A stretch of DNA of 64,000 nucleotides from Octopus bimaculoides (lineage: Eukaryota), in NCBI RefSeq assembly GCF_001194135.2, contig NC_068999.1, positions 41,671,311 to 41,735,310 on the forward strand, read 5' to 3'. Both the position numbers and the translations under genes were made by a program. Positions 10,747-52,103 of the stretch are shown one piece after another; position 1 is the first letter of the stretch, and each line of letters starts with the position of its first letter. The notes beneath the pieces are model-generated. The model searched no databases and was not told the origin of the DNA. It saw only the letters and a program-made list of their open reading frames with translations.

Positions 10747-12669
10747 ATGAAGAGAAGGCCGAATTGTATTGGGTTTCCCAGTTCGGTAATTGTGATATTT
10801 GTTTGTATTTTAGTATTTTCATTTACTTGGAGTGATTCTACAAGTAATGGAAAACCTTTTGAACTTTCTCCAAAGGACAAATTCGATGAAATAATGGATA
10901 AGTTTACATCGGTAACTGGAGAAAATTGTCGTTCGAAACACTACACAGATCTTCGTTTGGATAACGATCGAAAAAAAGGTGTTATATCTCAAGTACCTCG
11001 TTATAATACTTTCTTGTCAACTGTTTATTACACGAACAGATCTTCTCTGTTGCACGCTCACAACTTGGCCCTTAATAGGGCATTTTACTACAGTTATATC
11101 TATCAGGAACTTAACAAGAGCGAGGCCTTAGGTAGACAACCAGGTTTTGAATACATCTACTTCTCTTTGGCCGCTGATGTTTCTGCTGGAATTAGTATGA
11201 TAAATGGTAGTGGACTGTTCTTTGACAACAACTGTTCGTATCCTAATTGGTACACGACGTTGAAAATCAACGGTACTTTACCCCTTTTTGGCCCCAAAGC
11301 TTGGCGAGTGGATGACTACAACGAACCCACAAATTGGTTGCGGGAACCTACAAACAATACGATTGACATTCACGATTTTGGAGCCGGTCGAAGTCATAAT
11401 TATACCAACCCTGCCTACAAACACAGCCCTTGGTACTCTAAATGGTTACCTGATCTCGACAGTAATTCGGACACACTGAGGAAATATACCTACAATGTTG
11501 GTATTCGACGATCAGAAAAGACTGGTGAATTTCTTACTGACACTTTCCAAGTATCCTCTTTCTTTGGCCCACCTCAACCGGGTAGTCAAGAAATGGCCAT
11601 CCTTCCTGTTACCTTCACCGATCCTTATTTTGATTGTGGACGATCAAATAAATGGATTGTTAGTGCAACATCTCCTGTTGTTGAGTTTATGCCTCGATAT
11701 TCGAACTTTACTCATTTAAGAAGACCTCAGTAAGTATATTATATTTATATTATATTTCTCTCTTTCATATCTTGTGTTTCTAAGAATATACAAAGGCGAA
11801 TTAAGTTTTAGTTAGATAATTAGAATCGAGTTTATAGCTGTATGATTTCACTTGAAATTAACGACGCTTTTATTTTACTTTGGGTACACTGGAATGTTAG
11901 TCGAACTGTCCCACTTTGAGATTCCTGAATATCTAACCTACCTATCTATATTTGAAAAATAGAACGTGGGGGAATAAGAGATGTACAGATGGACAACGTG
12001 AGAGATTACAAGTCGATTTAATATTCGAGAAGTGATGGACAGAATGTAAAAGCACACAAGAATCAAAGTTGTGCACAGTTCGCCAAAAGAGGAAAGGAAA
12101 AAAAAATGGCATTTTGGTTGAACCCTTTACAAAAGAGTATGATATGTTAAATGATGGATGATATGATATAACACGAACATGGAAGTAGTAGCAAATTGCA
12201 ACATTTGTTTCTGCACCGGACACCTGAAGTGGCTGATGCTAGTACCCGCTGACTGGCTCCCGTGCCAGTGGCATGTAAAAAGCACTATCCGAACATGATC
12301 GACACAGGACCACCTGTCTAGCCCCCTATGCTGATGGCATGTAAAAAGCACCCACTACACTCTCGGAGTGGTTGGTGTTAGGAAGGACATCCAGCTGTAG
12401 AAACATTGCTAGATCAGATTGGAGCCTGGTGCAGCTGCTGGCTCTCCAGACCTCAGTCAAACCGTCCAACCCATGCCAGCATGGAAAACGGACATTAAAC
12501 AATGATGATGATGGTGTATTTCGTGTTATGCTTAGAGGCAATGCACAGCATCAGAATTTTAAGCTCAAGTCAAATATAACAAACAACTCCAAATTGTTCC
12601 TAAAGTATCTTCATAAATGGAGTCAAGACTGGCTGGTTTGTGCTGGCATCAAGTTGTGTAAGTTATATA

Positions 12670-12717
<48 letters not shown>

Positions 12718-15700
12718 TACAGGAGTGGCTGTGTGGTTAGTGACTCGCTTACCAACTACATGGTTCCGGGTTCAGTTCCACTGCGTGGCACCTTGGGCAA
12801 GTGCCTCCTACTATAGCCTCAGGCCTACCAAAGCCTTGTGAGTTGATTTGGTAGATGGAAACTGAAAGAAGCCCATCACATATATATGTTTATGTGTGTA
12901 TATGTTTGTGTGTCTGTGTTTGTCCCCTCCCCTCCACCATTTTTGCTGGTGTATTTACGTCCCCGTAACTTAGCAGTTCAGCAAAAGAGACCGATACAAT
13001 AGATACTAGGCTTACAAAGAATAAGTCCTGGGGTCGATTTGCTTGATTAAAGGTGGTGCTCCAGCATGGCCACAGTCAAATGACAAACAGGCAAAAGAAA
13101 AAATATATATGTGTGTGTCTAAAACTGTCACTCTGTTAGTTACAACAAGTGTTCCAGCTGATTCAATCAACAGAACAGCCAGCTCATGAAATTAACATGC
13201 AAGTGGCCGAGTACTCCACAAATATGCGGAGATTCAGCATGACACAACTGAATGTGACTGGGGCTGGGCCTTTGGATTCCAGGTAGAACTCATTTTTGCC
13301 AGTTGAGTGGACTGGAATCACATAAAATGAAGTTTCTTGCTCAAGACAAAGAGTGTAGTCTTCCAATGCTTAAGAAAAAAATCCATAATTCCATAAATTG
13401 CAAGATTTGCTTTTGTTTTATTTGTTTATTGTATTTTATTTTACTCTCTTGTTATATTTTTTTTCTTTTAGATTTGTGGCTGTTACAACTATTGATTTGG
13501 AATTTGAACGTATTGATTTTAACCCATGTCCAATATCTGAAGGAAATCCCCCACCAAACTATTTTGCTAACACAGCTCGATGCAAACCCACCACTTTAGT
13601 GAGAATTATTCATTTAAAGTCTTTGAGTAAATGCAAGGAAATGTGAGGGTTTGAGAGAAGAATACTGGTGACAGATGTATGATGTGTTGAGATTTACCAA
13701 GTTTACTCCTCAAATTCATCATCAACTTTGATTTTATTGGAAGGGCATCCAGCTGTAGAAACCATGCCAAAACAGATGATGGAGCTTGGTGTGGCCTCTG
13801 GCCTTACCAGCTCTGGTCAAACTGTCCAGACTACGCCAGCATGGAAAACAGACATTTGATGATGACAATTATACATAGGTGTGTGTTAACTAAAATAAGA
13901 TAACAAGGCCATGACAATTTATGAATAGAAAGGTGGTCTTACAGCTGTTTCAGGGAAATAAATGTTATCCCATCATCAGAGATGAATTAAGAGATTTTTC
14001 TCTTAACTCGTCTCTGATGGTGGGATATCATTTATTTTGCTGAAACAGCTGTAAGACCACCTTCTTCTTTATAAATGTCTTAGAAATATCACATTGCTTT
14101 GGTCTTGTTATCTTATTTTATTTAACATACACACGCTCAGATACGACCCACCTTAGACTCCTCACTCATACTATTATTGAACCAGGATTTATGGAAGGGA
14201 AAGAAAGGTTAATGAAAAAATTGAAGATTTCAGTATTATGTCGTATTCTCTGTCTGAAAATAAAGGAAATGGAGATTGCCATTTTCAAAATTTTTTCCTT
14301 TTTCAAACCTTCAAGGCAACAAAACTGTCCAAAATTGGAACTCAGTGGGGGAGTGGTATTTGAAAAAAATTTATAAATTTTCCCAAAAATTTAATTTATT
14401 TTTTATTTATTTTATTTTTTTTTTTACCAAAATTGCATTTCCCATTATAAGTGCATAGGACCAAAAAAAAAGAAATTGATCAAAATCAGTCTGAAAGTGG
14501 GGAAGGAAGATTCATGCATTTTCCAAAAAATTTTTTCATAAAAAGCTTATATTTCATCGTTTGTAAAGGGTGTAATGGAAAAAAATTTGAAAAATCTCTG
14601 TGAAAATAGAGAAAAATCCAGCTTATGTGAGTGTGCTTTCCCAAAGCTCTGCCAAGGTATTGTGTTTTAAAAGTTGCCCAGCAAGGACAGGATACTCAGC
14701 TAGTGTGTGTGTGTGTGTATGTATGTTTACATATATGCATGTATAATAAACTGATATGTATTTTCTTTCAGTGTGAACCATTGAGTGGTTTTGGTTTCCG
14801 ACGTGGTGGTTACATGTGTGCATGCTTACCTGGATACAAATATCCCTGGTGGCATGATGGACCATTCCTTGGAGTAGAAATAGAAGCTGCTACAAAAGAA
14901 GAATATGAAAATGGCTTTGATTGCCTCAAAGTTGATTGTAAGAAAACTCATTTGTTATTTCGTTTATCTTATTATTATTTATATGGCAGCAAAAGCTGGC
15001 GGAATTGTTTGCACAGCAGATAAAATGCTTAATGACATTTCTTCCAGTCTTATGTTTTGAGTTGAAATGCTACCAAGTTCAACTTTGCCCTTCATCTTTT
15101 TTTTTTGGGGGGGGGGGGGCAATGAAATAAGCAACAGTTGAGCATTGGGGTCAAAGTAATCAACCTTTGTGCCAATAGTAGAAAGGATTATTATTATTTC
15201 TTGGAGTAGTTGGCATTAGGAAGGGCATCCAGCTGTAGAAACCTTGCCAGATCATATTGGAGCCTGGTGCAGCCTTCTGGTTCGCCAGTCCTCAGTCAAA
15301 CCGTCCAACCCATGCCAGCATGGAAAACAGACGTTAAAACGATGGTGATGATGACAATGATGATTATTGCGAACTGGTAGATTGTTAGCACACTTATCGA
15401 AATGGGTGTACCAGCAGCACAAGCTGGACTGGAAGAAACCTGTAAAATTCTATTGTTCCTGGACAACTGCTCTGCACATCTCCCTGCTGAAGTTCTTGTG
15501 AAATGTAATGCTTTCAGCATTTAGTTGCCTCCAAATGTGACATCTGTTTTACAGCTTTGAGACCAAGGAATTTAACACTCCATGAAGAGCAACTATAAAA
15601 ATAATTTTATGAAGTGTGTGTTTGATGCAGTCAACAAAAGAGTGAGAATGCAAGACTCCCTGAAAGAGTTCACTGTTAAGGATGCCATCTATGTAGTTCC

Positions 15701-18700
15701 AAACGCTTGTAATTATATTGATAAATCAACAGTAACAAATGTCTGGCACAGAATATGGTCAATAACAATGTTTAATGAAAACAACCCTATAGGTAACTAG
15801 TTTGGAGGATTTTGTGTCACTAATGAGATGATGATGATATCAAAACTCATAACATGAAAAGTTGATCTTGTGGAAGTGTAAGTGATCTAGAAGAAGCAGA
15901 CATTGAAGAAATGCTAAACATTGACAGTGATGCACCTGTTGTGCATTCCTTGAAAGATGGGGAAATTGCTGAAATGATGTTAAATACGGATAAGAATGAA
16001 GACAGTAGTGACAATGACATAGAGGACACAGGTGAAAAAATTCCCATAGACAATATAATGAAAACTTGTGATCAGTTAATGGCTGGTCTTGAACAACGTG
16101 CATTTATCAGTGAGCAATTGATTATGGGAGTTTACTCAATTAAAAAGACATTGATTAGACAGAAACCTATGCTAATAAGACAGATGACACTTGAAGAAGT
16201 CTTTAAAAATGACCTCTCTCGTAGTGCAACTTCATCAGCTGAGAATCTGGTTTCTGACCCATCATTGGAAGTTTGCCTGCAACCTGAAGACAACGTTGGT
16301 GATACTGACAAGCCCTGTTCTACAACTTAACTGCAGTTACATATTTAGCCCAGTTTGTAGTCTTTCTTTATTCAAATTAGTGTGAATACTAATGCGTCTC
16401 TGTACAGAAATATTATGGTAATGTATATACCTGTACTTGTGGATCGTGTATTTTCGTTTTAAATTATCCCACTCTGTGTATTTTAATTCTGATCTTAATT
16501 ATCTCGCTATTTCATTCACCAGTATATTACTCTATATTTTTCCCACTGTGTGTATATATATATATATATGTGCTTTTGCTACCATAGCAGGGCGTCTGTT
16601 TTGATGTCTAGTTTACAGTGTGGGGCAGCTGGCTTTTCTTCTGAAATTTAAAAAAAGTATAAGGCAAAGTTGTCCCTGGTGGAATTTGAACTCAGAGCAT
16701 AAGGATAGATGAAATGCTGATAAACACCTCATAATAATAATATAATTAATTTCAACCTTAAGAATGGTTGCAGGCATAGCTGTGAGCTTCGGGAGTTTGC
16801 TTCCCAACCACTTGGTTTCAGGTTCAAGAATAGTGTTTGTACTGACAGTGACTTCGAAGTTTCAGCCAATTAAGCTATGATTGGACTGTTGTACATTTGA
16901 GTACATCTTGGCTGAAAGAATACTGATCTTTTTTTAGTTAAACAACCAGTGTAGTTTGTCTTTTTGTTTAACCCATGCCAGCATGGAAGATAGATGTTTA
17001 GTGATGATAATAGGGACAATGATAAAAATTCACTTAATTTTTTCTTTTCTTTTTTGTTTCTAGTTTCCCAGGTAATCCCAAAGAAGAACCCTGTTATTAT
17101 TGAAAATGTGAAGAAACGGTCTATATCATCTTTTAGTTCTGAGAAAGACGAATTTCTGAAAATCATATTTCCTCAGTCCCACAGGAGTCTCAGATGGCTT
17201 CAATCAAATAAAAAATACACTTCAAAAGATTTCATTCCATTACTGTCCAGTAGATATAGGCGGCATGTTCCAAAAGAAGACCTCCTTTCTCGTAAGAAAC
17301 GCGATCTCTTTGATAATGTCATGTGGATGAGAATGCGAGACATCCTTGAACGTAAAGAAAACACAAACAAAGACAACTGTGCAAGCCTCACAGCAAACCA
17401 ATTGCTTCTTCCAGGAGATGCCGGGTTCGGTGCCGAGAAGCAGTTTGAATCACAAGGACGTACTGCTCTGAGGCTGGCTCACTTTATTAGTAATTTTCTT
17501 CAAAATGTTGATGAGTATGAAGAATTTGGTATTCTTCGAGGTGATCGACGCTTACACGATACCCAGATGTATGGAGAGGTTATTGCTACTGTCATGGGTG
17601 ACTTCAAGATCGTTGGTGCTGGTGTATTCTTTGACCAATACAAATACCGGATATCACCCAGAAATAACACTGACCCACGATATGTTAATGAAGTAACACG
17701 AGAATATTTTGGTCCATTTGCTTGGAAGACTGGTGACAAAACAATTGCCAGAGTAATTGATTTTGCTGGTTTCAAGGAGCGTTACACAAATAAGCGCTGG
17801 TTTACAGACATGAAATCTCGTTGGGCAACTAACTATCAATCACTGGAAAAATTTATAACTCGTCCAATGATTCGGTCAGATATCAATGGATCCAGCTTGA
17901 TTAGATTTGAGTATTACCCACTCACATACCATGCACCAAAATATGAAGATGGAGAATGGTTACGTCCTGTCTTTAAGTGTGATGGCAGAGTTGATGCTTG
18001 GGTTCTCACTTATGTTGTTCCATTCTTTGGAATGAATACATTGAAGACTCAAATTGAATTTAAGTAAGTTGCCTCCTTGCTAATTAACCTACCATATTTG
18101 ATGGAATATTAGATGCAGTTTTGCTAATCTTTATTGGCACTTTTACTAATCTACAGCTCATTCTTACTAGTCTATACCTATCCATAGCTCCTTACTAATC
18201 TGTAGTCCTCTTCTAGTTAATCTATAAGTATATTTTAACTAATCTTTTCACTCTCTTTCTCTTCACCTCTTCAGTTCAACCCTTGTAAATATCATTTACT
18301 AATTTTTCCACCCTTTTTTTTTCTTAATTTCAGGGGAGTTGTTACAGTTGATGTCGACATCAATTATTTGGATGTAGACCAGTGCCCTGCTGATTTTTAT
18401 GTTGCCAACGCCTTCAAGAACACGGCTCGTTGTGACTATGAGAGCACATATGTAAGACATTTATTTTACGTAATGTTAGCAAATTAATATTATTAATTGC
18501 AGAATCACCATCTTTAGTATCACTGGTGCCAGCATTTGTATATATGCAGTACATATGTTGTGTGTTTTTGTAGGTTCATTGTTATAGATGTCTCTTTTAC
18601 TTGTTTCAGTCTTTTGACTGCGGCCATGCTGGAGCACCGCCTTTAGTCGAGCAAATCGACTCCAGGACTTATTCTTTGTAAGCCTAGTACTTATTCTACC

Positions 18701-18798
18701 GGTCTCTTTTGCCGAACCGCTAAGTTACGGGGACATAAACACACCAGCATCGGTTGTCAAGCGATGTTAGAGGAACAAACACAGACACACAAACACAT

Positions 18799-18839
<41 letters not shown>

Positions 18840-20448
18840 TACGACGGGCTTCTTTCAGTTTCTGTCTACCAAATCCACTCACAAGGCTATAGTAGATGAC
18901 ACTTGCCCAAGATGCCACGCAGTGGAAATGAACCCGGGGCCATGTGGTTGGTAAGCAAGCTACTTACCACACAGCCACTCGTTATATTTCTGTTGAGATA
19001 TTCTGATTTTACCTCAATTAATTTTGAAAATAATGAAGAATTTAGTAAAGTCATTATTAAGCTGGTGTTAGGAACATAAATTAACAAGAAATTTAGATGG
19101 AAGTCTTTGACTTAGATCACCTGAAAACAGGAACTTTGTATTATAGAACCAGCAGGGGTGGACTCATGTGGGTTGGTATCAAAAGAGTTAACATAAGTGT
19201 ATGTGTATGTTTTAGCTTCTGTGTAGTTTTTCTGTTATTTGTGATACTTTCCATCTGTGTATAAGTCTATTCCTTATATGGTAAAATCGACAAAAAGAGT
19301 TTAGAGAAGCTGCTGTGAGAGAGAGGATGTAATGCTCTGCTCTCTTTCTTGAATTTCTCTCCTGTCAACTTTTTCCTGAAGAAGAACTCAATCCGAAATG
19401 TTGGATTTTCAATTCCCCCACAGCAAGTTCACTGCACTCTTTCTGTTGATTGTACTAAATTACATAAGTCTTTTCAACGCAAACTACATAAGTCTCTTTG
19501 GATTCTTTTCGTTATAGAGTTCTGTGTTGATACATATCTGTGAGCTTTATGAGTTTGCATTTAGATCGTTTTTGGCTGAATTGTTAAGTAGTGTTTGCTT
19601 ACCAGCCATGTGGTTTTGGGTTCAGTCCTGTTGTATGGAACATTGGACAAGTGTCTTGATAGTTGCTGCCAAGACAAGTGTCTCACTTGTTGCCAGGACA
19701 ACCAACTTTTTGTCTCCTTTTCATATATCATCATCATCGTTTAACGTCCGCTTTCCATGCTAGCATGGGTTGGACGATTTGACTGAGGACTGGTGAAACC
19801 GGATGGCAACACCAGGCTCCAGTCTGATTTGGCAGAGTTTCTACAGCTGGATGCCCTTCCTAACGCCAACCACTCAGAGAGTGTAGTGGGTGCTTTTACG
19901 TGTCACACGCTCGAAATGGTGTCTTTTATGTGCCACCCGCACAAGCCANNNNNNNNNNNNNNNNNNNNNNNNNNNNNNNNNNNNNNNNNNNNNNNNNNNN
20001 NNNNNNNNNNNNNNNNNNNNNNNNNNNNNNNNNNNNNNNNNNNNNNNNNNNNNNNNNNNNNNNNNNNNNNNNNNNNNNNNNNNNNNNNNNNNNNNNNNNN
20101 NNNNNNNNNNNNNNNNNNNNNNNNNNNNNNNNNNNNNNNNNNNNNNNNNNNNNNNNNNNNNNNNNNNNNNNNNNNNNNNNNNNNNNNNNNNNNNNNNNNN
20201 NNNNNNNNNNNNNNNNNNNNNNNNNNNNNNNNNNNNNNNNNNNNNNNNNNNNNNNNNNNNNNNNNNNNNNNNNNNNNNNNNNNNNNNNNNNNNNNNNNNN
20301 NNNNNNNNNNNNNNNNNNNNNNNNNNNNNNNNNNNNNNNNNNNNNNNNNNNNNNNNNNNNNNNNNNNNNNNTATCCTCATCCATTCTCACCACATGTCCA
20401 TACCAGCGCAATCGTCTCTCTTGCATGCCACAACTGATGCTTCTAATA

Positions 20449-20491
<43 letters not shown>

Positions 20492-21942
20492 TAGAAGTCC
20501 TCAAGTCCTTCAAGTCAAGTTCCCATTAAAGGCCTGTGATATGCAGGAGACTGACTGACTGGGAGAACCAGTCAAGCAGCCCTGGCATCGATCACGTTCG
20601 GATCGCTAATTATTTTTATTTGCCTTTATGATCTATTTTAGATTTCTAGTTCTTTCTAGTTCTCTATTTTGGTTTTTAAATATTTTTCGTCGGTTTTCAT
20701 CAGAAACAGGTTGCACTGTGATGCAATAAGAGTTTATTCTTTCTGTTTCCAGTGTATTCCATTGCAATCCCATTTGAAATTCAAAGAAGGTTCCTACAAA
20801 TGTGAATGTAAGCAGGGCTATGAGTACCCATTTAATGACCTGCAGTGGTATTACAACGGTCAGACGATGGTTGAAGAATACAGGAAAAAGATGAACAATG
20901 AGCCAAACAGGTAAGATCAGTATTTTTGGTACAACAAAAATTGAAACAGGTAAAAAATGTTTTGAGCTGTATGGTGTGTGTGTGTGAAATTAAATAACTG
21001 ACAAGGAAACAGGAAACTAATTAATATATCTCATTAGCTTACAGACGTTTCTGCTATAAGATGCAAATATAAATGATTCCCCAAATAAACTTGTACTTCA
21101 TTTTAGAAGCTCCAGTGAAGCTATAAGGTGATGTACAAACACTTAGTTCTGACTGCATTGCATCCCACAGCAGAAACAGCTGTGAGCTAATGAAATTCAT
21201 TGCATAATTTCCTTTTCTCTTATTTATTTAATTTCACATTACACTCTATGCTCAGCTAATGCTTTTCTTTGAAGCATTTGAATATTGGATTTTAATGCAA
21301 AGTTATTAACACTGCCCAAAATTCGAGCATGGCTGTTGCCAGTGCCTCCGACTGGCCCTCGTGCCAGTGGCACGCAAAAGCACCCACTACACTCTCAGAG
21401 TGGTTGGCGTTAGGAAGAGCATCCAGCAGTAGAAACTTTACTAGATCAGACTGGAGCTCAGTACAGCCTTCTGGCTTGCCAGTCCTCATTCAAACCGTCC
21501 AACCTTTGCCAGCATGGAAAGCAGACATTAAACAACGACGCATGTATATATACACTTATACAACAGGCTTCTTTCAGTTTCCATTTACCAAATTCACTCA
21601 CAAGGCATTGGTCACCTTGGAACTATCAGAGACAAGTGCCCAAGGTGCCATGCAGTGGGGTTTGAAACCAAAAACATGCAATTGGGAAGCGAGCTTCAAG
21701 GAAGTTGCTTCATCTTTTGGGATGCAGGTTATCCACCCATTTAACTTCAGGGATGAGAGGAGAGTTGTGATGTTCATGCCTTTACCATTCATGCCATCAC
21801 TAACATTTACGATGTTTTTCTGCTTTATTTCTGTTTTAGGTATGATACATTGAAGTGCCGAATTGGTGGAGCTTCTTCTTTCAGAATAAGTTGGATTCTT
21901 GTAATTTTAACCATTTTGTACATAAAAATGTTTCAACTGTAG
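10747..21942 (+). CDS. 884-aa secreted or GPI-type protein with two tandem GPR158/GPR179-like ectodomain modules (Cache + Cys-rich EGF-like), no 7TM
   Basis: Exons 10747-11729, 13472-13598, 14772-14937, 17064-18063, 18334-18451, 20753-20910 and 21840-21942 total 2655 nt in frame, all GT-AG. N-terminal hydrophobic signal. Repeated motifs: PYFDCGRSNKW / PVFKCDGRVDAW, IDFNPCP...NTARC / LDVDQCP...NTARC, GGYMCACLPGYKYP / GSYKCECKQGYEYP. The gene model is solid; the family call is from motif memory. Confidence 0.8.
12720..13100 (+). mobile_element. tRNA-derived SINE with an internal (TA)/(TG) microsatellite, representative copy. Others at about 945-1100, 3395-3620, 18592-18980, 23500-23825, 25200-25580, 28070-28235, 42196-42340, 43210-43620 and 47035-47350
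   Basis: Head ggctgtgtggt(aag/tag)...ggttcagt(c/t)ccactgcgtggcaccttgggcaagtg; tail gtcgatttgct(c/t)gactaaaggcggtgctccagcatggccgcagtcaaatgac. Confidence 0.85.
13879..14134. mobile_element. Foldback (about 125-bp arms) with a hammerhead-like motif in each arm; Penelope-like terminal repeat relic
   Basis: Near-perfect inverted repeat centred on ttaagaga-tttt-tctcttaa. Arm motifs: CTGATGA..ggga/tccc..GAAAC-agct-GTA (minus, 13984-13935) and CTGATGG..GAAAC-agct-GTA (plus, 14009-14057). Confidence 0.6.
15400..16330 (+). mobile_element. Degenerate pogo/Tigger (DDE_1) transposase relic
   Basis: KILLFLDNCSAHLP...LPPNVTSVLQL*DQGI*HSMKSNYK...KDAIY with several in-frame stops, followed by an acidic Tigger-like tail. 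Confidence 0.8.
20381..20448 (-). mobile_element. RTE LINE ORF2 C-terminal fragment at a gap edge
   Basis: RSISCGMQERRLRWYGHVVRMDED; probably continuous with the element at 19727-19948 across the gap. Confidence 0.7.
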
Positions 21943-22188
21943 AGCTAAGCTATATTTTTCTCCAAAGAATATTTTTGTATAATCTGTTGCTTAGTAAATT
22001 TGTAGTATGGTTCTTTCTATTTTATTTCTCATTTGAAGAAATACCTATCAAACACAAACATCATAGATTTAACAAGATTCTTTAAATTTTCTATTTTGTA
22101 ATAATTTTTTAATTTTTTTTTTTAATCCAAAGCATCTAAAATAGCCAGGAATTTAAGTCCTTTTTCTTCCCTCAGCTATATTGATGTC

Positions 22189-22221
<33 letters not shown>

Positions 22222-23594
22222 GTCACTTTTTAATTATTTTTTTTTTTGTTCTTTATGCCTCCATCCTTTTGAATATATTCTCCAGATCATGTTAATTCTA
22301 AGACAAGATAAAATATTCCCTTCAAATATTTTCACAAAAAAACATAGTAAAACTTCACCCACCCACACTCAGCTACCATAGTTTTAGGTCTTATTTTGTA
22401 TTTGAAATGTTTTAATTCGCATTAGGTTATTATATCGTTTGTTTTTGTTTTGTTTTTTTAAATCTTACAGATTAAAAAGGAATTTTTTTCTTTACTAAAT
22501 GTAGATTTTAACTTCCGATCACTGAAACAAAAACAAACAATAAAGTTGCAAATATTCTTTAGACAAAGTCAAAAGTGCAATGTATAATATATTACATTAT
22601 ATTCATAGATTTTTTTTTTTTTGAACACCCATTATTTTCCTTTTAACCATTCCAACAAAATGCGATATTCCTTGGCCAATCATTGTAAGGGAGATGATCA
22701 TTACTAGCTAAATGGTGAGATCGGTTGAATTTTAATCAAAGAACAAGGTAGAAGGTGCGGAGATTATATTTAATGGTGGGATTTGTGTCTTGGGACCAAG
22801 GGAAAGGATACTTTCAGGTAAGTTGGTATTGAAAATGCTAAGTAAATATCTCAGGATGTTAAGCTTATTGTTTATTATCATCATTTAACGTCTGTTGTCT
22901 ATGCTGTCATGTGTTGGACAGTTTCACTGGGCTGGCACACTGGAAAGCACACCTTCCAGCATGGACAACGGATGTTAAATGATGATGATGATGATAAACA
23001 ATAAGCAAAACAATCTGAGATATTTACTTAACGCTTTTGATACTAACTTAAATGAAAGTATACTTTCCTTTGATTTTTAAAAAAGTCTTTTCTCTGCATA
23101 TTTCTTAGGAAAAGCATTTTCAGTTAATTTTGAAAGAAAAAAAAATGGAAAAATGGGTTCGGAGAAAGGAAATTTAACAAAATGGTTTTTTTGTTATTAA
23201 GCTGATATGATTGAAATAATGCCTGAAATTTTAACAAGAGGTTTTAATTTTGATATAAACACTTAAAAAAGGTGGGAGTGTATATGTATCATTGTACCAA
23301 TGAGTGTTAGAATTAATTTTGAGAATATCAAGAAATTTGGTGGGTGGGATTTAACAAAATTTATTCATTGTTAAATTGATGTGTTTGAAACATAACTTGA
23401 AATTGTGATGGGAGTTTTCAGTTTTAATGTGAAATATTCAAAAATGGGTGGTGTAGGGCCTTTGTATCATAGGACCAGAGGGTTTTCCTCATTGGAGCCA
23501 TTGCTGTGTGGTTAGCACCTTGGGCAAGAGTCTTCTATAGCCCCTGGACTGGCGAAAGCCTTGGCAAGGGGAAACTGTGTGGAAGACCATATAC

Positions 23595-23625
<31 letters not shown>

Positions 23626-24542
23626 TATACATGTGCATGTGTGTATTTGTCCTCCACCACTGCTTCACAACTGGTGTTGGTTTGTTTATGTTTGCATAAC
23701 TTAGTGGTTCAACATAAGAGGCCAACAGAATAAGCACTGGTGGTGGGTGGGGATGATTTGCTCAACTGAAACCCTTTCAAGGTAGTGCTCCAGCATGGTC
23801 ATGATTCAGTTATTGAAATAAGTAAAAAAAAAAAAGTACCAAACTACAGGTCGATTCCTGTATTTAAAAAGTATTGCAAAATGGGTCTTTGGAAAATTAA
23901 TCATTTTTGCCATAGACACCCTCTCCTGTTGGCATCTTTAACATATTTCATCCGACCTCCTCTCTTTAGACCTTGTACAGAACAATAAAACTAACAGGTC
24001 GATGCTATAGACTTGGCCAGGTCATTATCAACCCACTTCATCTTTGTATCAATTATATATTTCTTTGAAAGAAATTCAGATATTATATAAATTTTGTTAC
24101 TACCTCCTTTTAGCTCTTTTGTCACCATATTCCTGTTGAAATAAACTGTTTTTACTTCAATTAATTTTGAAATTAAAGAAGACTTTATGAAAATAATTCT
24201 CACGTTATTAAGCTAGTTTGGGAAATATAAATTCATGATATTTCAATGAAAGGTTTTAATGCAAAGCATTTTGAATAGGAATTTGTATCATAAGACCAGA
24301 GATGGTCTCAGTCTGGTATCAAATATGAGGTTTATATGATAAAATAAAAAAATTAAATTTCAATTAAAATTAACAAAACAAAAAAAATTTTAATTTCTTA
24401 TTAGAAATTCTGATTAATTTTTTTTAAACATTCACTTTTGTGAAATGTAGACTTGTCATTGTGGTTTTTCTTTTTATATTGTTCTGTCTAAATTTGTACA
24501 TAACTATAGACATATATATACATGTATGTGTATATATATTTA

Positions 24543-24579
<37 letters not shown>

Positions 24580-26790
24580 CACACATGAACACATAGATAT
24601 ATAAAAATGAAACATTTGAAAAAAGTATCTTTGTAAGATTTTGTAATAAAATATTTTATATTTTATTGTTGTATTTGTTATGATTATTGCAATATATATC
24701 ATCATCATCTTCATTTAACGTCCGTTGGGTTGGACGGTTTGACTGAGCTGTACGAGGCTCCAGTCTGATTTGGAATGGTTTTCTACAGCTGGATGTCCTT
24801 CCTAACGTCAACCACTCTGAGAATGTAATGGGTGCTTTTTATGTGCCACCAGCATGGGTGCCATTTGCGTGACACTGGTATCTGCCATGACTGCAATATT
24901 GCTCGGCTTGATGGGTCTTCTTCTCAAGCACAACATAATGCCAAAGGCCTTGGTCATTGCCTGCTTTGATAAGAGATTTTTCAGGACAAGAGTTGGCAAA
25001 TGTCTGGAATTTTCATGAGCTGCTTATAACATTTTTTTTGGTATTTAAAAGTCAATCAAAGAGGTCCAAAGGTGAGAAAAGATAACCACACAGATTGCAT
25101 ATCCAATTTAGACCACCAAGAACTGCAGATATATACAAGGCGACTCAGTGAACAAGAAAAATAACATATCTATACATTTTGTATTATTAAAGTCAATTAT
25201 ACTCTTTTACTCGTTTCAGTCATTTGACTGCGGTCATGCTGGAGCACCGCTTTTAGTCGAGCAAATCGACCCCAGGACTTATTCTTTGTAAGCCTAGTAC
25301 TTATTCTGTTGTTTTTGTTTGTTTTTACTGAACCACTAAGTTACGGGAACGTAAACACAGCAACGTTGGTTGTCAAGCAATGGTAGTGGGGACAAACACA
25401 GACACACAAATATATATATATATATATATGACAGGCTTCTTTCAGTTTCCATCTACCAAATTCACTCACAAGGCTATAGTAGAAGACACTTGTCCAAGGT
25501 GCCATGCAGTGGGACTGAACCTGGAACCATGTGGTTGGAAAACAAGCTTCTTACCACACAGCCATTCCTGCGCCTATATTCACACAGCCACTCCTGCACC
25601 TATATAGCTACTCCTACTTAAGTTAAATGTGTCTGACATACGTTTCTGCTACACTGATATCTCACAATGTGGTTTCCATTTGCATCCAGTTTGTTCATCT
25701 GTGGCTTTATTCAAGGAGATCGCTTCAAAGGACAGCAGTGTGCAACACCTTAAATAAAGCTACACACATATACACGTGAGGGCATGTGGCCTAGTGGTTA
25801 GTGTGTTTTGCACTCGTGACCCAGAGAGAGTGACTTTGATTCCCAGACTGGGCAGTGTGTTGTGTTTTTGAGGAAAATACTTCATCTCATGTGCTGTCAA
25901 GACAAGGAGACACAAATATGCACACATGGTGGCATGTAAAAGCACCACCCAAACGTGGTCAATACCAGCCCCATCTGGCCCCTGTGCCAGTGGCACGTAA
26001 AAAACACCCACTACACTCTGAGAATGGTTGGCATTAGGAAGGGCATGCAGCTGTAGAAACACTGTCAGATCAGATTGGAGCCTGGTTCAAACTTCCTGGC
26101 TTCTCAGACTCCCCGTTGAACTGTCCAACCCATGCTAGCATGGAAAACAGACGTTAAACGATGATTATGATATATACGAAGGGCTTCTTTCAATAGTCAT
26201 CTTCCAAATCCACTCACAAAACTTTGGTCAACCCAGGGCTATAATAGAAGACACTTGCCCAAGGTGTCATGAAGGTGAGACTAAATCCAAAATTAGGTTG
26301 CAAAGTGAATCACTCAAACACAGTCATACCTATATTTTTTTACGTCAAGATTTGTATGGATTCTGTCAACCAAATTCATTCACCAAGCCTTGGTTGACCC
26401 TGGGCTATAGTAGAAGAAATTTGTGGCACTTTGAACTGAAAACCAAGTGGTTGCAAAAGACAAACTTCTTAACCTTACAGCCAAACTTGTACCAACACAT
26501 TACACTGTTGGAGAACCAGTGGGACATACCCTTAAATTATCACACAAAGAAACAATTATTTTAATAAATTTTCATTTTTAATAAATTGCTTTTACACTGT
26601 TTCCGTTTGTTTTTTGTTTTTTTTTGTTTTTTATATTTGTTAAAGACCCCTGAAGGAGGCAGTACCCCTAACAAACATAATAACCTTCTTTAAAATCACA
26701 GGACTCAGTTTCTTCAGCTAGAGTAAAAAAAAAAAATAAAAAAAAAGAATCTAAAGGTCCACAGGTCTTTATAGCAGTTTCCCTTGAGAA

Positions 26791-29766
26791 TTATTCAATG
26801 TAGCTAGTTTTGGCATTGAGTAGCACTTGCCGTGATTTGAACCCCTTGTCATAGTAATCAGACGCTTCTTTTTCAGGGAAAGGTTTTGCCATACCCATTG
26901 TATATTGTGGTTGTACACACCGTACGTAGAAGCCACTGGTTTTCTTCCAGTCATTAGGCTGGTATTTGAGAAAATAATAGGACGTACAAAGAGTGCCGTA
27001 AATTCCAAGAATCCATGGAGAACTGCGACGAACAACTAGAGCTGGTTTTACGCCGATAATTGGTTTCAATACCTAGAAGAGAAAAAGAAAAACAGTTTTG
27101 TAAGAAAAATGTTAAAACATCCATATACTATTAGTATCTCTGCCTTAGCAAAGGCAGAGGTATTGTTTTTAGTTGTGTTTGTTTGTTTGTCTGTGGACAA
27201 GATATCTCAAGAACTGCTGGATGGATTCGGATGAAATTTTCAGGGATGTTTGGCCTCGTGACTAGCACGAACTGATTAGATTTTATGACTGATCCAGTAC
27301 TGGACAAGGATTCTGGATTATTTTCCTGCGTTTTTACTTAATTTTTGAGAGCGGTCAGGTTCATTTTTAGTATTCTCATTTGTGAGAGCAGTCGAGTTTA
27401 TTTCAGATATTCTCATTTTAAAAAATCATCTCCGGCTAATCGTTGAGAGGACGTTGGTGTTGCCTTGGCAGAGGTTTGCATTCTCTGAGTGCTCTCGTTT
27501 TTATTAGTATTATTATTAAGGTGGAGCAGAGCAGGAGGGTGAGGGCTAAAAAAAATTGGATGCTGAATTTGCTGACAACATAGCTCTGTTGGCAAACACA
27601 GTGAGGGAGGCAGAGGAGTTCATACAGGGGTGGAGACTGTGTCAATGAGTGTGGGACTGAAAATGAATGAAATTAAGACAAAGTATCTGGTAGAGAATAT
27701 TAAGAAGCCAGAGAAGATTATGAATGTAGGCAGGAAGCCACTAGAGTTGGTTGAGGACTTCCTGTATCTGAGAACAAAGATTGGGAAGTCGGACCTTTGT
27801 AAAGACCTGAAGATCCATCTCTTCGTTGCTGCAGTGGAGTCTGTGCTGTTGTATGGGTCTGAGACTTGGACACTGACCAAGAAACTCACTCAGATGGTGG
27901 ATGAGTGCTACACAAGAATACTGAGGATGGCTCTGAAGATGAAGAACTCGATGAAGAACTCAGAGCTGTACGAGAGCCTCTAATAGTTAGCTCTTAAATG
28001 ACACAGACCCATGCAAGCATGAAAAAGTGCATGTTAAAATGATGATGATGATATATATACATAGAGACACACACGACGGGCTTCTTTCAGTATGCATTTA
28101 GCAAATCCACTTACAAGGTTTTGGCTGGCCCATGGCTATAATAGAAAATACTTGCCCAAAGTGTTATGCAGTGGGACTGAACCAGGAACCATGTGATTTG
28201 GAAGCAAGCTTCTTACCACACAGCCACATCTGTGCTCAATTATTTATTAACCCTTTAGCATTCAGGTTGCTCTGTTGGATGTAATGCTTATAAGACAAGA
28301 AAAGAACAGGAAGAAAGAAAAAGCATTCGCAACTGAACTGATGGTGGTGATGGTGGGGTAGTATTTGAGAGGATGAAGAGGGGCGATGGGTTCTGTGCCG
28401 GGTGCTGAAAGGCTAGAGCATGATGGAAGGATAAGTGTCTTGCTATGGAAGAGGTACAAAGCTACCCTGCATCATATAAACGTAGGTGGGAGCAACTGGA
28501 GAAAAATTCCAATTGGAGATGGGCACACGTGTGTGTAGAATTATAATAATGCGAAGCAGTATGTTTCTTACACCAGTTAACATTAGCTAATATGTCACAT
28601 GCTGTTTAGCACTAGGTAGGACCTGATCGAGCAAACCTCTGATCAAAAGTGTTATTGCTTTGACCGTTTTGATTTAAAATATTTGGTGGTGGGGGGGTCA
28701 ACCTTGAATTTCAGTGAAAATTCCTATTTTCTAGGACGGGCTGATGTCTATTTCCAACAAGGTGAATACTGAAGTTGTTATATAGTGATTCCCCTTTTCT
28801 AAATACACAACAAAAAAGTCAAAACAACATGAGTTTCAAGCAGGTTGTTCGCATTGTTAGAAATAACAGTAAAATCACCTTCTAACGATTTAAAAACAAA
28901 GAACTACACCAATGTGATCTTCGGTGCACTGTGCCATGAAAAAGGCAGGATAGTCACACCTAGAATGTCTCTGATCACAGGTCCGCTCCATCGGAGCCAA
29001 TCTGGGTTTAGAGGTCACAATCTGTTTAGTTGCATTTTATTAACCCATCATCCACACGGCTATTTGGCATTTGAAAAGCGTACAGGTACTGAATAAGACC
29101 GGTATCCTGAATACTTTACGGTCCGAAACAATAATACGGAGTTGGAATCATTAAACTAAAAAATATAATAATATAAGCCAGTCGGTCTGCCTGCAATAAC
29201 AGCTAACTCTACTTCAGATCGCATTCTACTGTATTAAAGGAAAAACATGAAGGATAACGTAGTCTTAGAACGTCATTGATCATAGGTTTGTTCAGGGTTG
29301 ACCTTAGGTTGAACAATAATTTATTTCTAACGGTCGTACAAACACAATACAAACAATTAATGATAATTTGTTTTTATATTTTGTTAATATCATCTTCCAA
29401 GAAGAAAACAAGGAAATAATTAAATGTAAAATAAGCAGCTATTGTGCTTACCTTGTAGAGGGCTTCAAAGGGCATTGAACCGATCCTTTTAAATACATTT
29501 CTCGGGTGGACTTCAGGGACATAACGTGGTTCATTGGGGGACAGGTTCTGATCGAGTAACCATTGTTTCCTGAGTTGTCGATCTGCATCTGTCATGCCTT
29601 TACCATCGAGACGTTGGCGCTCATGAGGCATTGGCTCGATAGAAAAAGGCGGATACTGACTACCCTTGTACTCAGCCAACCTAGCCAGTCTCCTTTTCTT
29701 TTCCCATGGCTTTTCATTTGGGGCAACCAGGGCTTCCTGCCCTGTTTTATTCACATTGCCCTCCAT
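26791..29766 (-). CDS. NDUFB6: NADH dehydrogenase [ubiquinone] 1 beta subcomplex subunit 6 (B17), 198 aa
   Basis: Exons 29766-29452 and 27072-26791, phase-0 GT-AG intron. ERQRL...MTDADRQLRKQWLLDQNL and YYFLKYQPNDWKK...SDYYDKGF match invertebrate B17 subunits. Confidence 0.88.
27131..27500 (+). mobile_element. Helentron-associated (HINE/DINE-1-like) non-autonomous element
   Basis: 5' hairpin ctctgcc-ttagcaaa-ggcagag, (GTTT)n/GTCT microsatellite, 3' subterminal repeat ggcagagg, then stem-loop gcattc-tct-gagtgc and a T-rich end. Confidence 0.55.
27555..27983 (+). mobile_element. Degenerate RTE-clade reverse transcriptase fragment in the NDUFB6 intron
   Basis: AEFADNIALLA...VGLKMNEIKTKYL...FLYL...ESVLLYGSETWTLTK...CYTRILR. 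Confidence 0.8.
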
Positions 29767-30789: not shown

Positions 30790-33700
30790 TCATAAAATAT
30801 TGTCAGTACTTGATGCTAAATTAGAACAAGTGGAAACTTTACAAACTGTGTCTTTATGTTGTAAATCTGTGATTTTTGTAGGTGAGGAAATTTGGTTCCA
30901 TGAAAATAAATATTTATTTTTATGTTTGAAGAATGGTTCTTGTGTCTGACTGAATATGTCAGGTGACTTCATGCGATCTTGTGTGTTCTTCTGTGTTTCG
31001 TAGATTATATCCGGGGACGATATGTAGTGCTTTGTACTTTCAGGTGTGCGACAAAGTGGATGAATTGAGTGTAATAAATATTTTGGTTTGCTTTTCTGTG
31101 TTGGAGAAAAAGTATCAGTGGAGAGCAATAGGTTACAAGAGTTAGTCTCTGTTTCATTGTATACATCTGGTGATTGTATAGAATTATCTACATCAGGCTG
31201 TGTTTCAGGAAGTATATTGGGAGTGTCACTCTGAACAGAAGTGTTTGAGGTGAATATGTCAGGTGACTGTGGAAGAGTCTGGACGTTTTGACAGAAATCT
31301 TCAGACAGATGTGAATGGACATTTGAATCGTCTGGTTGTGTACAGAATAAATCAGGTGAGGCATAAATATCCAATGTTTTATTACATAGCACAGGTGTTC
31401 TTTGATGTAAATGAGTTTTATTCTGTATTTTACAATCGACCTTAGTTGAATTTTGATTCAATAGACCATGGATTTCTGGTAGGACTTCTGCATCTAAAAT
31501 CTCACATGTGACATCACAAAGAGTTTCTGTAAATACTTCAGGGGACGGAGTTTGCTGTTGATTTACATCGGGTTTTAATTTAAAACAGGAATGAAATGGA
31601 TTGTCTATGGAAATGGTATTTGTGTTTTGTAAAGTAAACAAATGTTTCGTTTTATCTTGTGTTGCAGACAGAATTTCAGGCGAAAATAAATCTTGTGATT
31701 CAGGAAAGGATTTACAAAACTGTTCTGATTCACGAGATTGTTCCATAATTTGAAAAATATTCCCCATTGTTTTAGGAATGATTAACGAATTACAAGAATT
31801 ACATCTAGAGATTTCTTTTGATTCTATAGAATTTGTAGTTTTTGGTGAGTTGAACTCATTTTGAGACAATATTCTTGGAGAAAACAAAGGCCTGGAGTTA
31901 GTATAAGTTTCTAATATTTCTTCGGATGAATCTATGAATGTTTGAACTTTTCTATTGAGGGGTCCCATGGGTGAAGATGGCACACTGATTGTCTTTGGAA
32001 TAGTATTGGAAGGAGACAAATTTTTCATTTGGCATTTTGCTTGGAATTGATTAGAATTATTGATTTTCTTGAAAATTTGTCTTTTTAAAAGGCATTTGGA
32101 CAGAGAATACTTAAATTTTTTAGAATTTCGTTGATTGAAAGAATTGTTAATACCATCTCTTCTATTTAAACAAATATTTCTTACTGAAACTGGAGTACTA
32201 CTGGGTGTCTGTGGAATAAATTGGTTTGAAGATTTCCAAGAACAGCTAAATAGGTCTTCTGAAGTATTGACAGGTAATACGACATCTGGATTAGGAGAGG
32301 ATAAAAACAATTCAGTCGAAGGATCAAATAAGTCCTGTGACATATTGCCCTCTTCTTTGGGACTCTCTTGGCAACCTTGTTGAAGACTTCCAGATGGTAA
32401 TAATACATAAGACTCAGAGTTGTGACTTTCAACAGAATTATTTGAAGGAGAATTTGGATGAGACTGTTTCTGGTTCTCTGAAGAGCATTTAATTGGAGTT
32501 ATTGGAAATAAGCGTTCAATATTTTCTTCAGTTGAAGAATCTTTATGTGGCAGATTTCTATATGATGTTTGATAAATATGGAAATGTGGAACTGGTGTAG
32601 AAGTGAAACTATGGCATTTTCTAAGATTAACATTGGTTGAGAAAGTATGAAAGCCATCTGCAAATGGTAAGTCTGAAAGCTGACTTTTCCTGATCCTGGA
32701 AGAGATTTGAGATCCCTTGGTTGGAACAGAATGATGGTTTTTATTGCGTGGTCGAAGAGTCTTATTAACAAATTGTTTGCTTTCAGATAAGCTTGCATTG
32801 CCTAATTTTTTAGAAAACCATAAAGCTTCTTTTCCTCCATTATATGAAATATTTTCTTTATTTTCTGAAAAATCATTGCACAGACATCTTGGAAGATATG
32901 AGCGACATTGATTACATTTCTTCCTTTTCTTAGATTCATTTAGGAAAGATGGTTCACTTTCTAGGCAGGAATCTTGATTTGGAAGTCGTTTAGACAAACA
33001 CCTTATAGGATGGATTGTTTCTTGAAATGGAGAAAGCTGTTTGAAAGAAGCAGATGTAGACATGTTGCCATTTATAGATTCATTCTCAGAGAACATTCTG
33101 TTAATGTGAAAGGAACTAATGACTGAAACATCAATGCAAGAATCACGAGGAATACTCGACATGTCAGCAATTTTTGAAAAGTCTTCAGGAAGGATATTGC
33201 AAATACTATTTGAAGGATTGGATTTGGGTGATGATTCTTTAATAACATCGACAGCAGACATGTGTCTCTCAGCAGACTGGAACTTTGGTAAGTATTCATT
33301 TGTAGAAGAGACTTTTAGAGGATATTTACTATATACATTAGAAATGTTTCCGTTGTTGACAGTAGTTTTAGTGACAATTTTAGCTGGACTAGACGATAAA
33401 TATAAATCCTCACTTTTAAGTAAATATTTGTCATCATTCACTGTAATAGGTTGTCTGGTAACAATTTTATTTCTAATGTCACAAAACTGATTTGCTTCAC
33501 TCCAACTATTTAGATTATAATTATGTATCATTAATTTAGAATGGCAAGTCAAATTGCCAGTGAATAAATTACTTCTGTTTGATTTGTCCTTGTTTTTGTA
33601 CCTTGGGTTATCATATACTCTGCAATTACTTTCCCAGATACATTTTAAAAAACGATATGGAACTGACAAGTTGAGAAGGAAATATGTCACAGTTGATGAA

Positions 33701-36894: not shown

Positions 36895-46765
<9,871 letters not shown>

Positions 46766-51236: not shown

Positions 51237-52103
51237 ATGCCTTATCACTGTGATATATGTGGTAAATCATTCTCTCAGAATTGTAATTTAACTAGACACA
51301 AACATATTCATACAGGAGAGGAACCGTATCACTGTGATGTCTGTGGTAAATCATTCACTCGAAACGATCATTTAAGTGAACATAAACGTATTCATACAGG
51401 TGAGAAACCATACCAGTGTGATATCTGCGGTGAATCGTTCTCCACGAGAGGTAATTTCACCACCCACAAACGTATCCACACCGGAGAGAAACCGTATCAC
51501 TGTGGTATATGCGGCAAGTCATTCTCTGTAACTAGTAACTTAAATGCCCACAGAAGCATTCATACAGGAGAGAAACCATATCATTGTGGCATCTGTGGTA
51601 ACTCATTCTCTCATAGTGGTGACTTAACTAGACACAAACGTATTCATACTGGTGAGAGACCCTATCACTGTGATATCTGCGGTAAATCGTTCCCAAGAAC
51701 ATGTACTTTAACTACCCACAAACGCATCCACACTGGAGAAAAACCATATGCATGTGATATCTGTGGTAAATCATTCTCTCATAGTAGTGACTTAACTAAA
51801 CACAAACGTATTCACACAGGAGAGAAGCTCTACCAGTGTTATATTTGTGGTAAATCATTCTCTGCAAGCAGTTCTTTAACTGCTCACAAACGCATCCATA
51901 CAGGAGAGAGGCCCTATCATTGTGATATTTGTGGTAAATCATTCACACAACCATTTAAATTAACAACTCACAGACGCATCCATACGGGAGAGAAACCATA
52001 TCACTGTGATATCTGTGGTAAGTTATTCACTCGAAGTGGTGACTTAAATAAACACAAACGCATCCATGTAGGAAAGGAACCATATCACTGTGATCTGTGG
52101 TAA
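51237..52103 (+). CDS. C2H2 zinc-finger array protein, 10 complete fingers, no effector domain visible
   Basis: 288-aa ORF of YxCxxCGKSF...[10 protein letters not shown] repeats. Frameshifted finger remnants flank both ends, so it may be a truncated or pseudogenising copy. Confidence 0.8.

Follow-up and report, generated by a model that had tools for sequence, protein, structure and literature searches.

An Octopus bimaculoides gene for a protein with two GPR158/GPR179-type ectodomain modules, no seven-transmembrane core and a GPI-signal-like tail

The DNA analysed here (the window) comprises 64,000 nucleotides (nt) of Octopus bimaculoides contig NC_068999.1 (positions 41,671,311 to 41,735,310, forward strand). 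Between positions 10747 and 21942 of its plus strand lies the gene LOC106873574, whose product of 884 amino acids (aa) carries two copies of an ectodomain of the type found in GPR158 and GPR179. The latter are vertebrate class C orphan/glycine receptors, with Smog and CG31760 of Drosophila as their fly relatives. The locus raises the question of how such an ectodomain could work in a chain that has no seven-transmembrane (7TM) core and would not be a G protein-coupled receptor (GPCR). Our answer, to which we give a probability of roughly 60%, is a glycosylphosphatidylinositol (GPI)-anchored tandem Cache protein that would bind ligands and either need a transmembrane partner or act as a trap.

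Gene structure, tandem modules and predicted fold

The window is AT-rich and contains eight N gaps. Two long open reading frames (ORFs) on the plus strand, 10747-11733 and 16994-18067, could be joined with several short ones into a gene of seven exons, in which all acceptors are AG after a polypyrimidine tract and all donors are GTAAG or GTGAG. The resulting coding sequence of 2655 nt is in frame, and its translation is residue-for-residue identical to RefSeq XP_014776491.1 (P0105; uncharacterized LOC106873574, Octopus bimaculoides) and to UniProt A0A0L8H0V5, which is labelled 'GPR158/179 extracellular domain-containing protein'. LOC106873574 is a genuine, strongly conserved gene that had been annotated before and is uncharacterised. 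Its parts are as follows.

10747-11729, plus strand: exon 1, from ORF and splice site; encodes aa 1-327 plus 2 nt, beginning with the start codon and the signal peptide (nt 10747-10833, aa 1-29) and covering the greater part of the Cache domain of module 1; the donor, CA/gtaagt, is phase 2
13472-13598, plus strand: exon 2, from tblastn and sequence; final Cache strand of module 1 and start of the Cys-rich GPR158_179_EC segment, 'FVAVTTIDLEFERIDFNPC...ARCKPTTL'
14772-14937, plus strand: exon 3, from tblastn and the C-terminal part of Pfam PF22572; EGF-like end of module 1, 'CEPLSGFGFRRGGYMCAC...EEYENGFDCLKVD', phase-1 donor
17064-18063, plus strand: exon 4, joined in frame to exon 3; carries the linker (aa 426-505) and the larger part of the Cache domain of module 2
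18334-18451, plus strand: exon 5, corresponds in module 2 to exon 2, 'GVVTVDVDINYLDVDQC...ARCDYESTY'
19949-20371: assembly gap of 423 N in intron 5, between the donor after 18451 (gt) and the acceptor before 20753 (ag)
20753-20910, plus strand: exon 6, closes module 2 with its EGF-like part, 'CIPLQSHLKFKEGSYKCECKQGYEYP...NNEPN', phase-2 donor AG/gtaaga
21840-21942, plus strand: exon 7, last conserved Cys and GPI-signal-like tail; TAG stop at 21940-21942
22471-22544, plus strand: candidate poly(A) signals by pattern only, ATTAAA at 22471 and AATAAA at 22539, 530-600 nt past the stop

Exon 2 was located by tblastn with homologues from Saccostrea, Rotaria and Dicrocoelium. For exon 1, homologues were found with E values down to 8e-123, which argues against a chance reading frame, and for module 2 down to 3.9e-168. 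The junction of exons 3 and 4 is spanned in a single chain by homologues.

The protein is ordered as signal peptide, module 1 (aa ~30-425), a basic linker of ~80 aa, module 2 (aa ~506-857) and tail. It has two hydrophobic segments only, aa 4-33 and aa 859-884. The first of these follows the residues MKRRPN, ends in TWS and reads as the signal peptide that an earlier note on this DNA had claimed; the orthologues described below also begin with a hydrophobic leader. The Pfam family GPR158_179_EC (PF22572) matched in two stretches, one per module, with 155.2 bits against a cut-off of 28.1 (E 7e-46), and a homologue consisting of module 1 only still reached 68.8 bits. Weak Pfam EGF and MCP-like PDC matches were also obtained with the 884-aa protein, while 7tm_3, VWA and VGCC_alpha2 were all unmatched in the same scan.

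The two modules are homologous to each other, as the same note had supposed. BLASTP aligned them over 341 columns with 25% identity (E 6e-19), and each contains eight conserved Cys at equivalent positions (61, 297, 347, 365, 371, 386, 388 and 421 in module 1; 531, 731, 776, 792, 799, 815, 817 and 857 in module 2). The introns between exons 1 and 2 (after 'RRPQ') and between exons 4 and 5 (after 'IEFK') are both phase 2 and match in position, and those between exons 2 and 3 (before 'CEPL') and between exons 5 and 6 (before 'CIPL') are both phase 0. These positions and phases, common to both modules, indicate a tandem duplication of a three-exon unit that would be ancient, older than the protostome radiation.

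A sequence search of the PDB with the spliced protein found GPR158 and GPR179 at about 5e-10 (1.4e-13 with a profile), the alignment lying in exon 6 and covering residues 264-361 of GPR158. Single exons gave no useful match to PDB sequences; the spliced protein or a profile was needed to find GPR158/GPR179. The likeness extends through the 'xNGxxxEEEY...Y...C' helix to the last conserved Cys.

Folds were predicted on orthologue proxies. For module 2 this was a Dreissena protein (P0057) with 62% identity to the module 2 query from octopus, whose AlphaFold model has a predicted local distance difference test (pLDDT) score of 84; for module 1 a Saccostrea protein (P0039) was used, 52% identical to octopus exon 1, with a model pLDDT of 75. 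The best structural matches of the module 2 model were GPR179 (8irj_A, 6.6e-14; 8d1b_A, 4.4e-11) and GPR158 (7ewp_B, 8e-8), together with the bacterial double-Cache (dCache) structure 3lic (1.3e-8) and many chemoreceptor ligand-binding domains. The module 1 model matched the bacterial dCache sensor 3lic at 2e-5 and GPR158 weakly (E 0.25), besides weak partial matches to alpha2delta folds at E 0.1 or worse (8fd7_D, 0.1). A double-Cache (PDC) fold is confirmed for both modules as far as these models represent them, in agreement with the structure check named in the earlier note. That note had expected both folds to match the GPR158 ectodomain, and this part held for module 2, whose nearest matches are GPR179 and GPR158, but not for module 1, which is nearer to bacterial dCache (2e-5 versus 0.25). 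Only module 2 is thus specifically predicted to be an ectodomain of the GPR158/GPR179 (mGlyR) type, and module 1 is the older, more divergent copy.

The missing receptor core and the C-terminal tail

Pfam, hydropathy and a search of the whole window agree with the earlier claim that the protein is 7TM-less and that no 7TM exons lie before NDUFB6, a convergent gene on the minus strand (26791-29766), 4.8 kb downstream. The 7tm_3 segments of six GPCR-type relatives, taken from the search of representatives and confirmed by Pfam, were used as tblastn queries against all 64 kb, and no 7tm_3 exon was found. Their best match (14902-15078, frame +1; E 0.022, 28% over 61 aa), which corresponds to the TM2-3 region of GPR158-type GPCRs and is the only one with E below 0.1, was rejected as chance, because it is isolated, hydrophobic and of low identity, lies in another frame than exon 3, whose end it overlaps, and continues into intron 3. 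The plus-strand ORFs of 21943-26800 are repeat-derived only and include no 7TM exon, and between aa 33 and aa 859 of the protein no hydrophobic segment is present.

In the six GPCR relatives, a Cys-rich stalk, 'PCxxGCxxCxxxxPC', comes after the counterpart of C857, and the first transmembrane (TM) segment, TM1, comes after the stalk. In the octopus chain the stalk is absent, and C857 runs straight into R-I-G-G-A-S-S and the tail. No cytoplasmic sequence follows, including the region that recruits RGS7-Gbeta5, as the chain ends at the hydrophobic tail. By every criterion of a class C GPCR, namely 7TM core, stalk and cytoplasmic tail, the octopus protein falls outside this class. A reading of the tail as the TM1 of an ancestral GPCR was also considered and not retained in this direct form, since the GPCR relatives have the stalk between the equivalent Cys and TM1, whereas the tandem family is without it.

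The tail, ...NRYDTLKCRIGGASSFRISWILVILTILYIKMFQL followed by the stop, is present exactly as the earlier note had given it, from KCRIG to KMFQL. It can be read as G860-G-A-S-S, FRIS, the 11 hydrophobic residues WILVILTILYI, and KMFQL before the stop, with these landmarks.

21856-21858, plus strand: last conserved Cys, C857
21865-21879, plus strand: small-residue cluster, G860-S864
21892-21924, plus strand: hydrophobic stretch, W869-I879

For comparison within the family, 144 sequences chosen by length and tail motif were aligned. After the last Cys they show R (141 of 144) and then [LVI], A, G, A, [SA], [SG], [IVL] and Q; the longest uncharged run has a median of 14 residues and is followed by 0-4 mostly basic residues, and the median length from Cys to end is 29 aa. 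An internal TM-like segment is absent from all except two; one of these has a cluster of TM segments resembling that of the GPCR relatives, the other a single hydrophobic stretch. As a rule of thumb, a GPI signal was taken to consist of small residues at omega to omega+2, a spacer of ~5-10 residues and a hydrophobic end, in a protein with no cytoplasmic domain, and the octopus tail has this form. GPI anchorage is thus strongly suggested by the sequence, in line with the GPI-signal-like tail of the earlier note, and the tail consensus is kept in about 140 orthologues. The proposed signal would begin 3-4 residues past the last conserved Cys and consist of the small cluster, a spacer of ~6 residues, 11-16 hydrophobic residues and the stop.

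The same segment could instead be a true single-pass TM anchor, giving a type I protein with a cytoplasmic stub of 0-5 residues and no GPI. A 19-residue window within aa 859-884 has a mean Kyte-Doolittle value of at least 1.6, and in many orthologues the last 1-4 residues are basic (RRH, RR, KFR) and resemble a stop-transfer sequence. However, uncharged runs of median 14 residues, and 11 in octopus, are short for a bilayer span, and the invariant A-G-A-[SA]-[SG] cluster 8-10 residues before the hydrophobic run would have no role in a plain TM segment, while it stands where the omega/omega+2 site is expected. The precedent of alpha2delta also favours GPI: there the hydrophobic segment at the C-terminus was initially taken for a transmembrane one before it proved to be a GPI signal (PMC9901441). 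We consider the TM anchor improbable and retain GPI anchorage.

Family distribution, linker and surroundings of the gene

A profile search of 1.84 billion representatives returned 1120 matches at E<1e-3, including full-length tandem proteins of 800-1010 aa. About 140 full-length orthologues could be collected that share the tandem architecture, 8+8 Cys and the tail consensus CR-[LVI]-A-G-A-[SA]-[SG]; their sources are molluscs, flatworms, rotifers, a nematomorph, tardigrades and crustaceans, and every insect order listed is represented, with Drosophila species among them. Searches with the modules returned mollusc, flatworm and rotifer proteins, many of which are single chains that extend from the end of module 1 through the linker and module 2 into the tail, and members could be named from Biomphalaria, Argopecten/Pecten, Schistosoma, Macrostomum, shrimps, Gordionus (Nematomorpha), a tardigrade, a copepod, a cestode and a rotifer. 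A search seeded with the shrimp protein gave orthologues of ~800 aa in crustaceans and all listed insect orders, and none of these arthropod proteins carries 7tm_3 in the precomputed Pfam annotation. In Drosophila species the orthologue has 807 aa and belongs to the same 90%-identity cluster as those of Anastrepha and Musca (129 members); D. simulans GD20036 is an example among the sibling-species entries. The earlier note had allowed that uncharacterised invertebrate orthologues may exist, which is correct and understated, as the family spans Spiralia and Ecdysozoa.

Octopus and insect proteins are 46% identical in module 1 and 42% in module 2. Octopus module 2 is 60-63% identical to proteins of Solemya, Physella and Dreissena and 46-47% identical to Argonauta LOC106882646 and a Gigantopelta protein, and comparison of these sequences gives at least two paralogue lineages in molluscs. 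The source names of the relatives are 'uncharacterized', 'hypothetical' or automatic labels of the 'GPR158' type, and full-text literature searches found no functional study of the family and no paper on the tandem 7TM-less architecture.

Whole ORFs of orthologues are present on intronless Logan contigs of 2.6-3.6 kb. One mollusc contig (L001, SRR27896763) begins intron-like and then continues through the spliced equivalent of exon 2 to module 2 and the tail stop, after which about 700 nt of 3' untranslated region follow. These contigs show that in the relatives both modules lie on one mRNA and that the message ends after the tail.

The contigs also bear on whether the octopus gene could be an artefact, made of two neighbouring genes fused, or of a truncated GPR158-type GPCR whose 7TM exons were lost to a gap or misassembly. 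The gap inside the locus and the existence of single-module relatives in the databases (Saccostrea, 405 aa; Rotaria, 408 aa, partial) would fit such an artefact. The gap is intronic, and the exons at its flanks abut without loss: the exon 5/6 junction '...CDYESTY/CIPLQS...' is gap-free when compared with the exon 2/3 junction of module 1, 'ARCKPTTL/CEPL', and with all orthologues. In addition, the independent assemblies of O. vulgaris and O. sinensis encode 884-aa orthologues with 834-835 identical residues (94%) and zero indels, so that the octopus coding sequence can be taken as complete. The same full-length architecture in about 140 proteins of many phyla, whole ORFs on intronless contigs among them, the spliced mollusc contig in which exons of module 1 lead on to module 2 and the message stops after the tail, and the lack of any 7tm_3 signal in 64 kb with NDUFB6 convergent 4.8 kb downstream also argue against an artefact, which we regard as very improbable.

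Among the database records, one protein of 874 aa (P0143, MetaClust UPI00078A07BE) combines two GPR158_179_EC matches with a 7tm_3 core and is a tandem-ectodomain class C GPCR; it could bear on the question whether the tandem family has lost the 7TM core or the GPCRs have gained it.

Several 7TM-less orthologues of ~650-900 aa are mislabelled 'G-protein coupled receptor 158/179' or 'putative G-protein coupled receptor' in several organisms, for example Macrostomum, Schistosoma, Mesocestoides, Hirondellea, Locusta, Harpegnathos and Lygus. The cluster representatives of Macrostomum and Schistosoma end in the same lipid-anchor-type tail; because of this, and because the listed arthropod entries are without 7tm_3, such labels are misleading.

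The linker between the two modules contains three basic sites in octopus, all encoded by exon 4.

17111-17119, plus strand: KKR (aa 442-444)
17252-17263, plus strand: RYRR (aa 489-492)
17291-17302, plus strand: RKKR (aa 502-505)

In mollusc relatives such motifs are found at both ends of the linker, with R-[KR]-[KR]-R-S immediately following module 1 and R-H-K-R-[DE] immediately preceding module 2, and flatworm orthologues also have linker sites of the Rx[KR]R type. In octopus and other spiralians, proprotein convertases could split the chain at the linker, so that module 1 would become a separate fragment and module 2 would keep the GPI anchor. One could go further and see in the protein a cleaved precursor, the functional species being module 1, shed in soluble form to serve as decoy or binding protein, together with GPI-anchored module 2, or else peptides derived from the linker. 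The three octopus sites, the mollusc sites at both linker ends and those of the flatworms fit this precursor. Against it, any Rx[KR]R site is found in only 24 of 144 orthologue linkers, the inspected arthropod linkers are short (~60 aa) and show no such site, and the Cys number per module is even; with eight conserved Cys in each, no obvious inter-chain disulfide is expected. Furin cleavage as a family-wide feature was rejected, since with this count it cannot be the mechanism of the whole family. The hint of alpha2delta-like processing in the earlier note is plausible for spiralians and does not extend to the inspected arthropods; the linker motifs suggest processing that would be lineage-specific at most. 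As an account of the function, the cleaved precursor is a possible but less probable reading, and a GPI-anchored tandem protein is preferred.

Elsewhere in the window, NDUFB6 could be recognised by the ORF of its first coding exon (29374-29766; Pfam NDUF_B6, 9.8e-9) and that of its C-terminal exon (26791-27069). Intron 3 of LOC106873574 contains the remnant of a pogo/Tigger-type DDE transposase (15582-16330, plus strand; Pfam DDE_1, 2.6e-4), and short units resembling short interspersed elements, with the translation '...FDCGHAGAP.LVEQID.RTYSL', are repeated in the introns and downstream (near 13043, 18600, 25228 and 43233). An uninterrupted ORF of 1460 aa on the minus strand (30790-35172) has an N-terminal Rep_fac-A_C match (RPA-like OB/zinc, 3.2e-10) and no further Pfam match; it is Ser/Asn-rich and resembles a single-exon gene. 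On the plus strand, an exon with the N-terminal signature of a proteasome alpha subunit (39630-39790) and a C2H2 zinc-finger array of 288 aa (51237-52103) were also noted.

Proposed function and relation to known systems

In the mechanism that we propose, the product would enter the secretory pathway by its N-terminal signal peptide, and the mature protein would most likely stand on the outer leaflet of the membrane, held by a GPI anchor and with no intracellular part, so that it could not signal alone. Its two modules, each a double-Cache sensor with an EGF-like Cys-rich segment, would serve as ligand binders. They would bind a conserved extracellular ligand, or more than one: a small molecule lodged in the Cache pockets, or else a proteoglycan or protein on the surface. 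Action could follow through a transmembrane partner in cis, the protein being a co-receptor like alpha2delta or GFRalpha, or by sequestration of the ligand.

With GPR158 (mGlyR) and GPR179 the octopus protein shares the ectodomain type, Cache plus EGF-like Cys-rich segment (PF22572), at E values of 5e-10 to 1e-13 by sequence and 6.6e-14 by fold. It differs from them in having two tandem ectodomains instead of one and a GPI-signal-like end, and in being without the stalk (PCxxGCxxC), the 7tm_3 core and the RGS7-binding tail.

Alpha2delta, like the related case CACHD1, is extracellular and Cache-containing, with two sensor units and a C-terminal hydrophobic segment, as is the octopus protein. 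In alpha2delta this segment is a GPI signal and the chain is proteolytically cleaved (PMC9901441). Alpha2delta works only through a transmembrane partner, and the octopus protein would do so too. The octopus protein, in contrast, is without the VWA domain, which in the alpha2delta/CACHD1 family is flanked by dCache_1 domains; it belongs to another Cache subfamily and has an EGF-like segment after each Cache. No link to calcium channels is known for it, and cleavage sites are not conserved across its family.

The sensors of bacterial dCache chemoreceptors and histidine kinases (3lic, PctD, McpU, TlpQ) have the double-PDC/Cache fold that is common to both octopus modules. Amino acids, polyamines and histamine are among the small ligands of domains of this bacterial type, and the dCache_1 amino-acid motif is made up of Tyr/Arg/Trp/Tyr/Asp ligand contacts with an 'RPWY'-like element and a carboxylate-binding Arg. 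The octopus protein differs in being eukaryotic and disulfide-rich, in its EGF-like additions and in having no transmembrane signalling helix. GFRalpha with RET, CNTFRalpha with gp130, and the glypicans follow the same logic, that of a lipid-anchored binder without a cytoplasmic part which recruits a transducer or acts as a sink; in sequence and fold, GFRalpha, CNTFRalpha and the glypicans have no relation to the octopus protein.

Several points weigh against the proposed mechanism. The fold models were built on orthologues and their TM-scores are modest (0.3-0.6). The hydrophobic stretch of the octopus tail is short, 11 residues followed by KMFQL, and the candidate omega site lies 3-4 residues past a Cys that is probably disulfide-bonded. 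Linker sites for cleavage occur in the minority of orthologues given above. Small-molecule binding is proposed from fold homology only. When the modules were compared by eye with the amino-acid motif, the W-[YF] of the 'RPWY'-like element appeared conserved in both, but not the carboxylate-binding Arg: the 'Y-x4-W-[YF]' element reads 'YKHSPWY' and 'YTNKRWF', with the Arg position varying among orthologues.

Another reading is a molecule that mainly serves adhesion or the organisation of matrix and binds proteins or heparan-sulfate proteoglycans instead of sensing small molecules. Module 2 comes nearest in fold to GPR179, which has been solved in complex with pikachurin (8d1b), and interactions of GPR158 with heparan-sulfate proteoglycans and of GPR179 with pikachurin are on record; for the former, the partner bound is reportedly glypican-4. 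The very high conservation of both modules would also fit conserved protein partners. On the other hand, the fold is that of a ligand-binding dCache sensor, and adhesion and sensing do not exclude each other. As the main role, adhesion is possible but less probable. Within the preferred reading of a GPI-anchored tandem Cache binder, by analogy with these receptors, binding of a protein or proteoglycan partner is as plausible as binding of a small molecule.

A more speculative extension, which we consider rather unlikely, is a 'split' class C-type receptor system present across protostomes. Recognition and transduction, fused in GPR158, would in such a system be encoded by different genes: the GPI protein would capture an amino-acid-like transmitter or a secreted cue with its two Cache sites and present it to, or withhold it from, a separate transmembrane transducer. 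This transducer could be an ion channel, or a GPCR of the Smog/GPR158 type whose ectodomain has the same fold. Spiralians would have a diffusible regulator in addition, namely module 1 shed after cleavage by convertases.

GPR158 was reportedly identified not long ago as a metabotropic glycine receptor, and vision depends on GPR179. The sequence of the octopus protein was already in the databases; what the analysis adds is the recognition of a deeply conserved 7TM-less, tandem and GPI-tailed branch beside these receptors, including a Drosophila orthologue. For annotation it means that the name 'G-protein coupled receptor 158' on several insect, crustacean and flatworm records of ~800 aa is misleading, as these proteins are not GPCRs. 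The conservation from octopus to Drosophila, with 42-46% identity between octopus and insect and with Drosophila and Musca in the 90% cluster of Anastrepha, implies an important, probably neural or developmental, role in extracellular recognition. Because Drosophila species carry the orthologue, the function is directly testable by genetics, and the family could reveal a partner-dependent use of Cache sensors in animals, parallel to that of alpha2delta.

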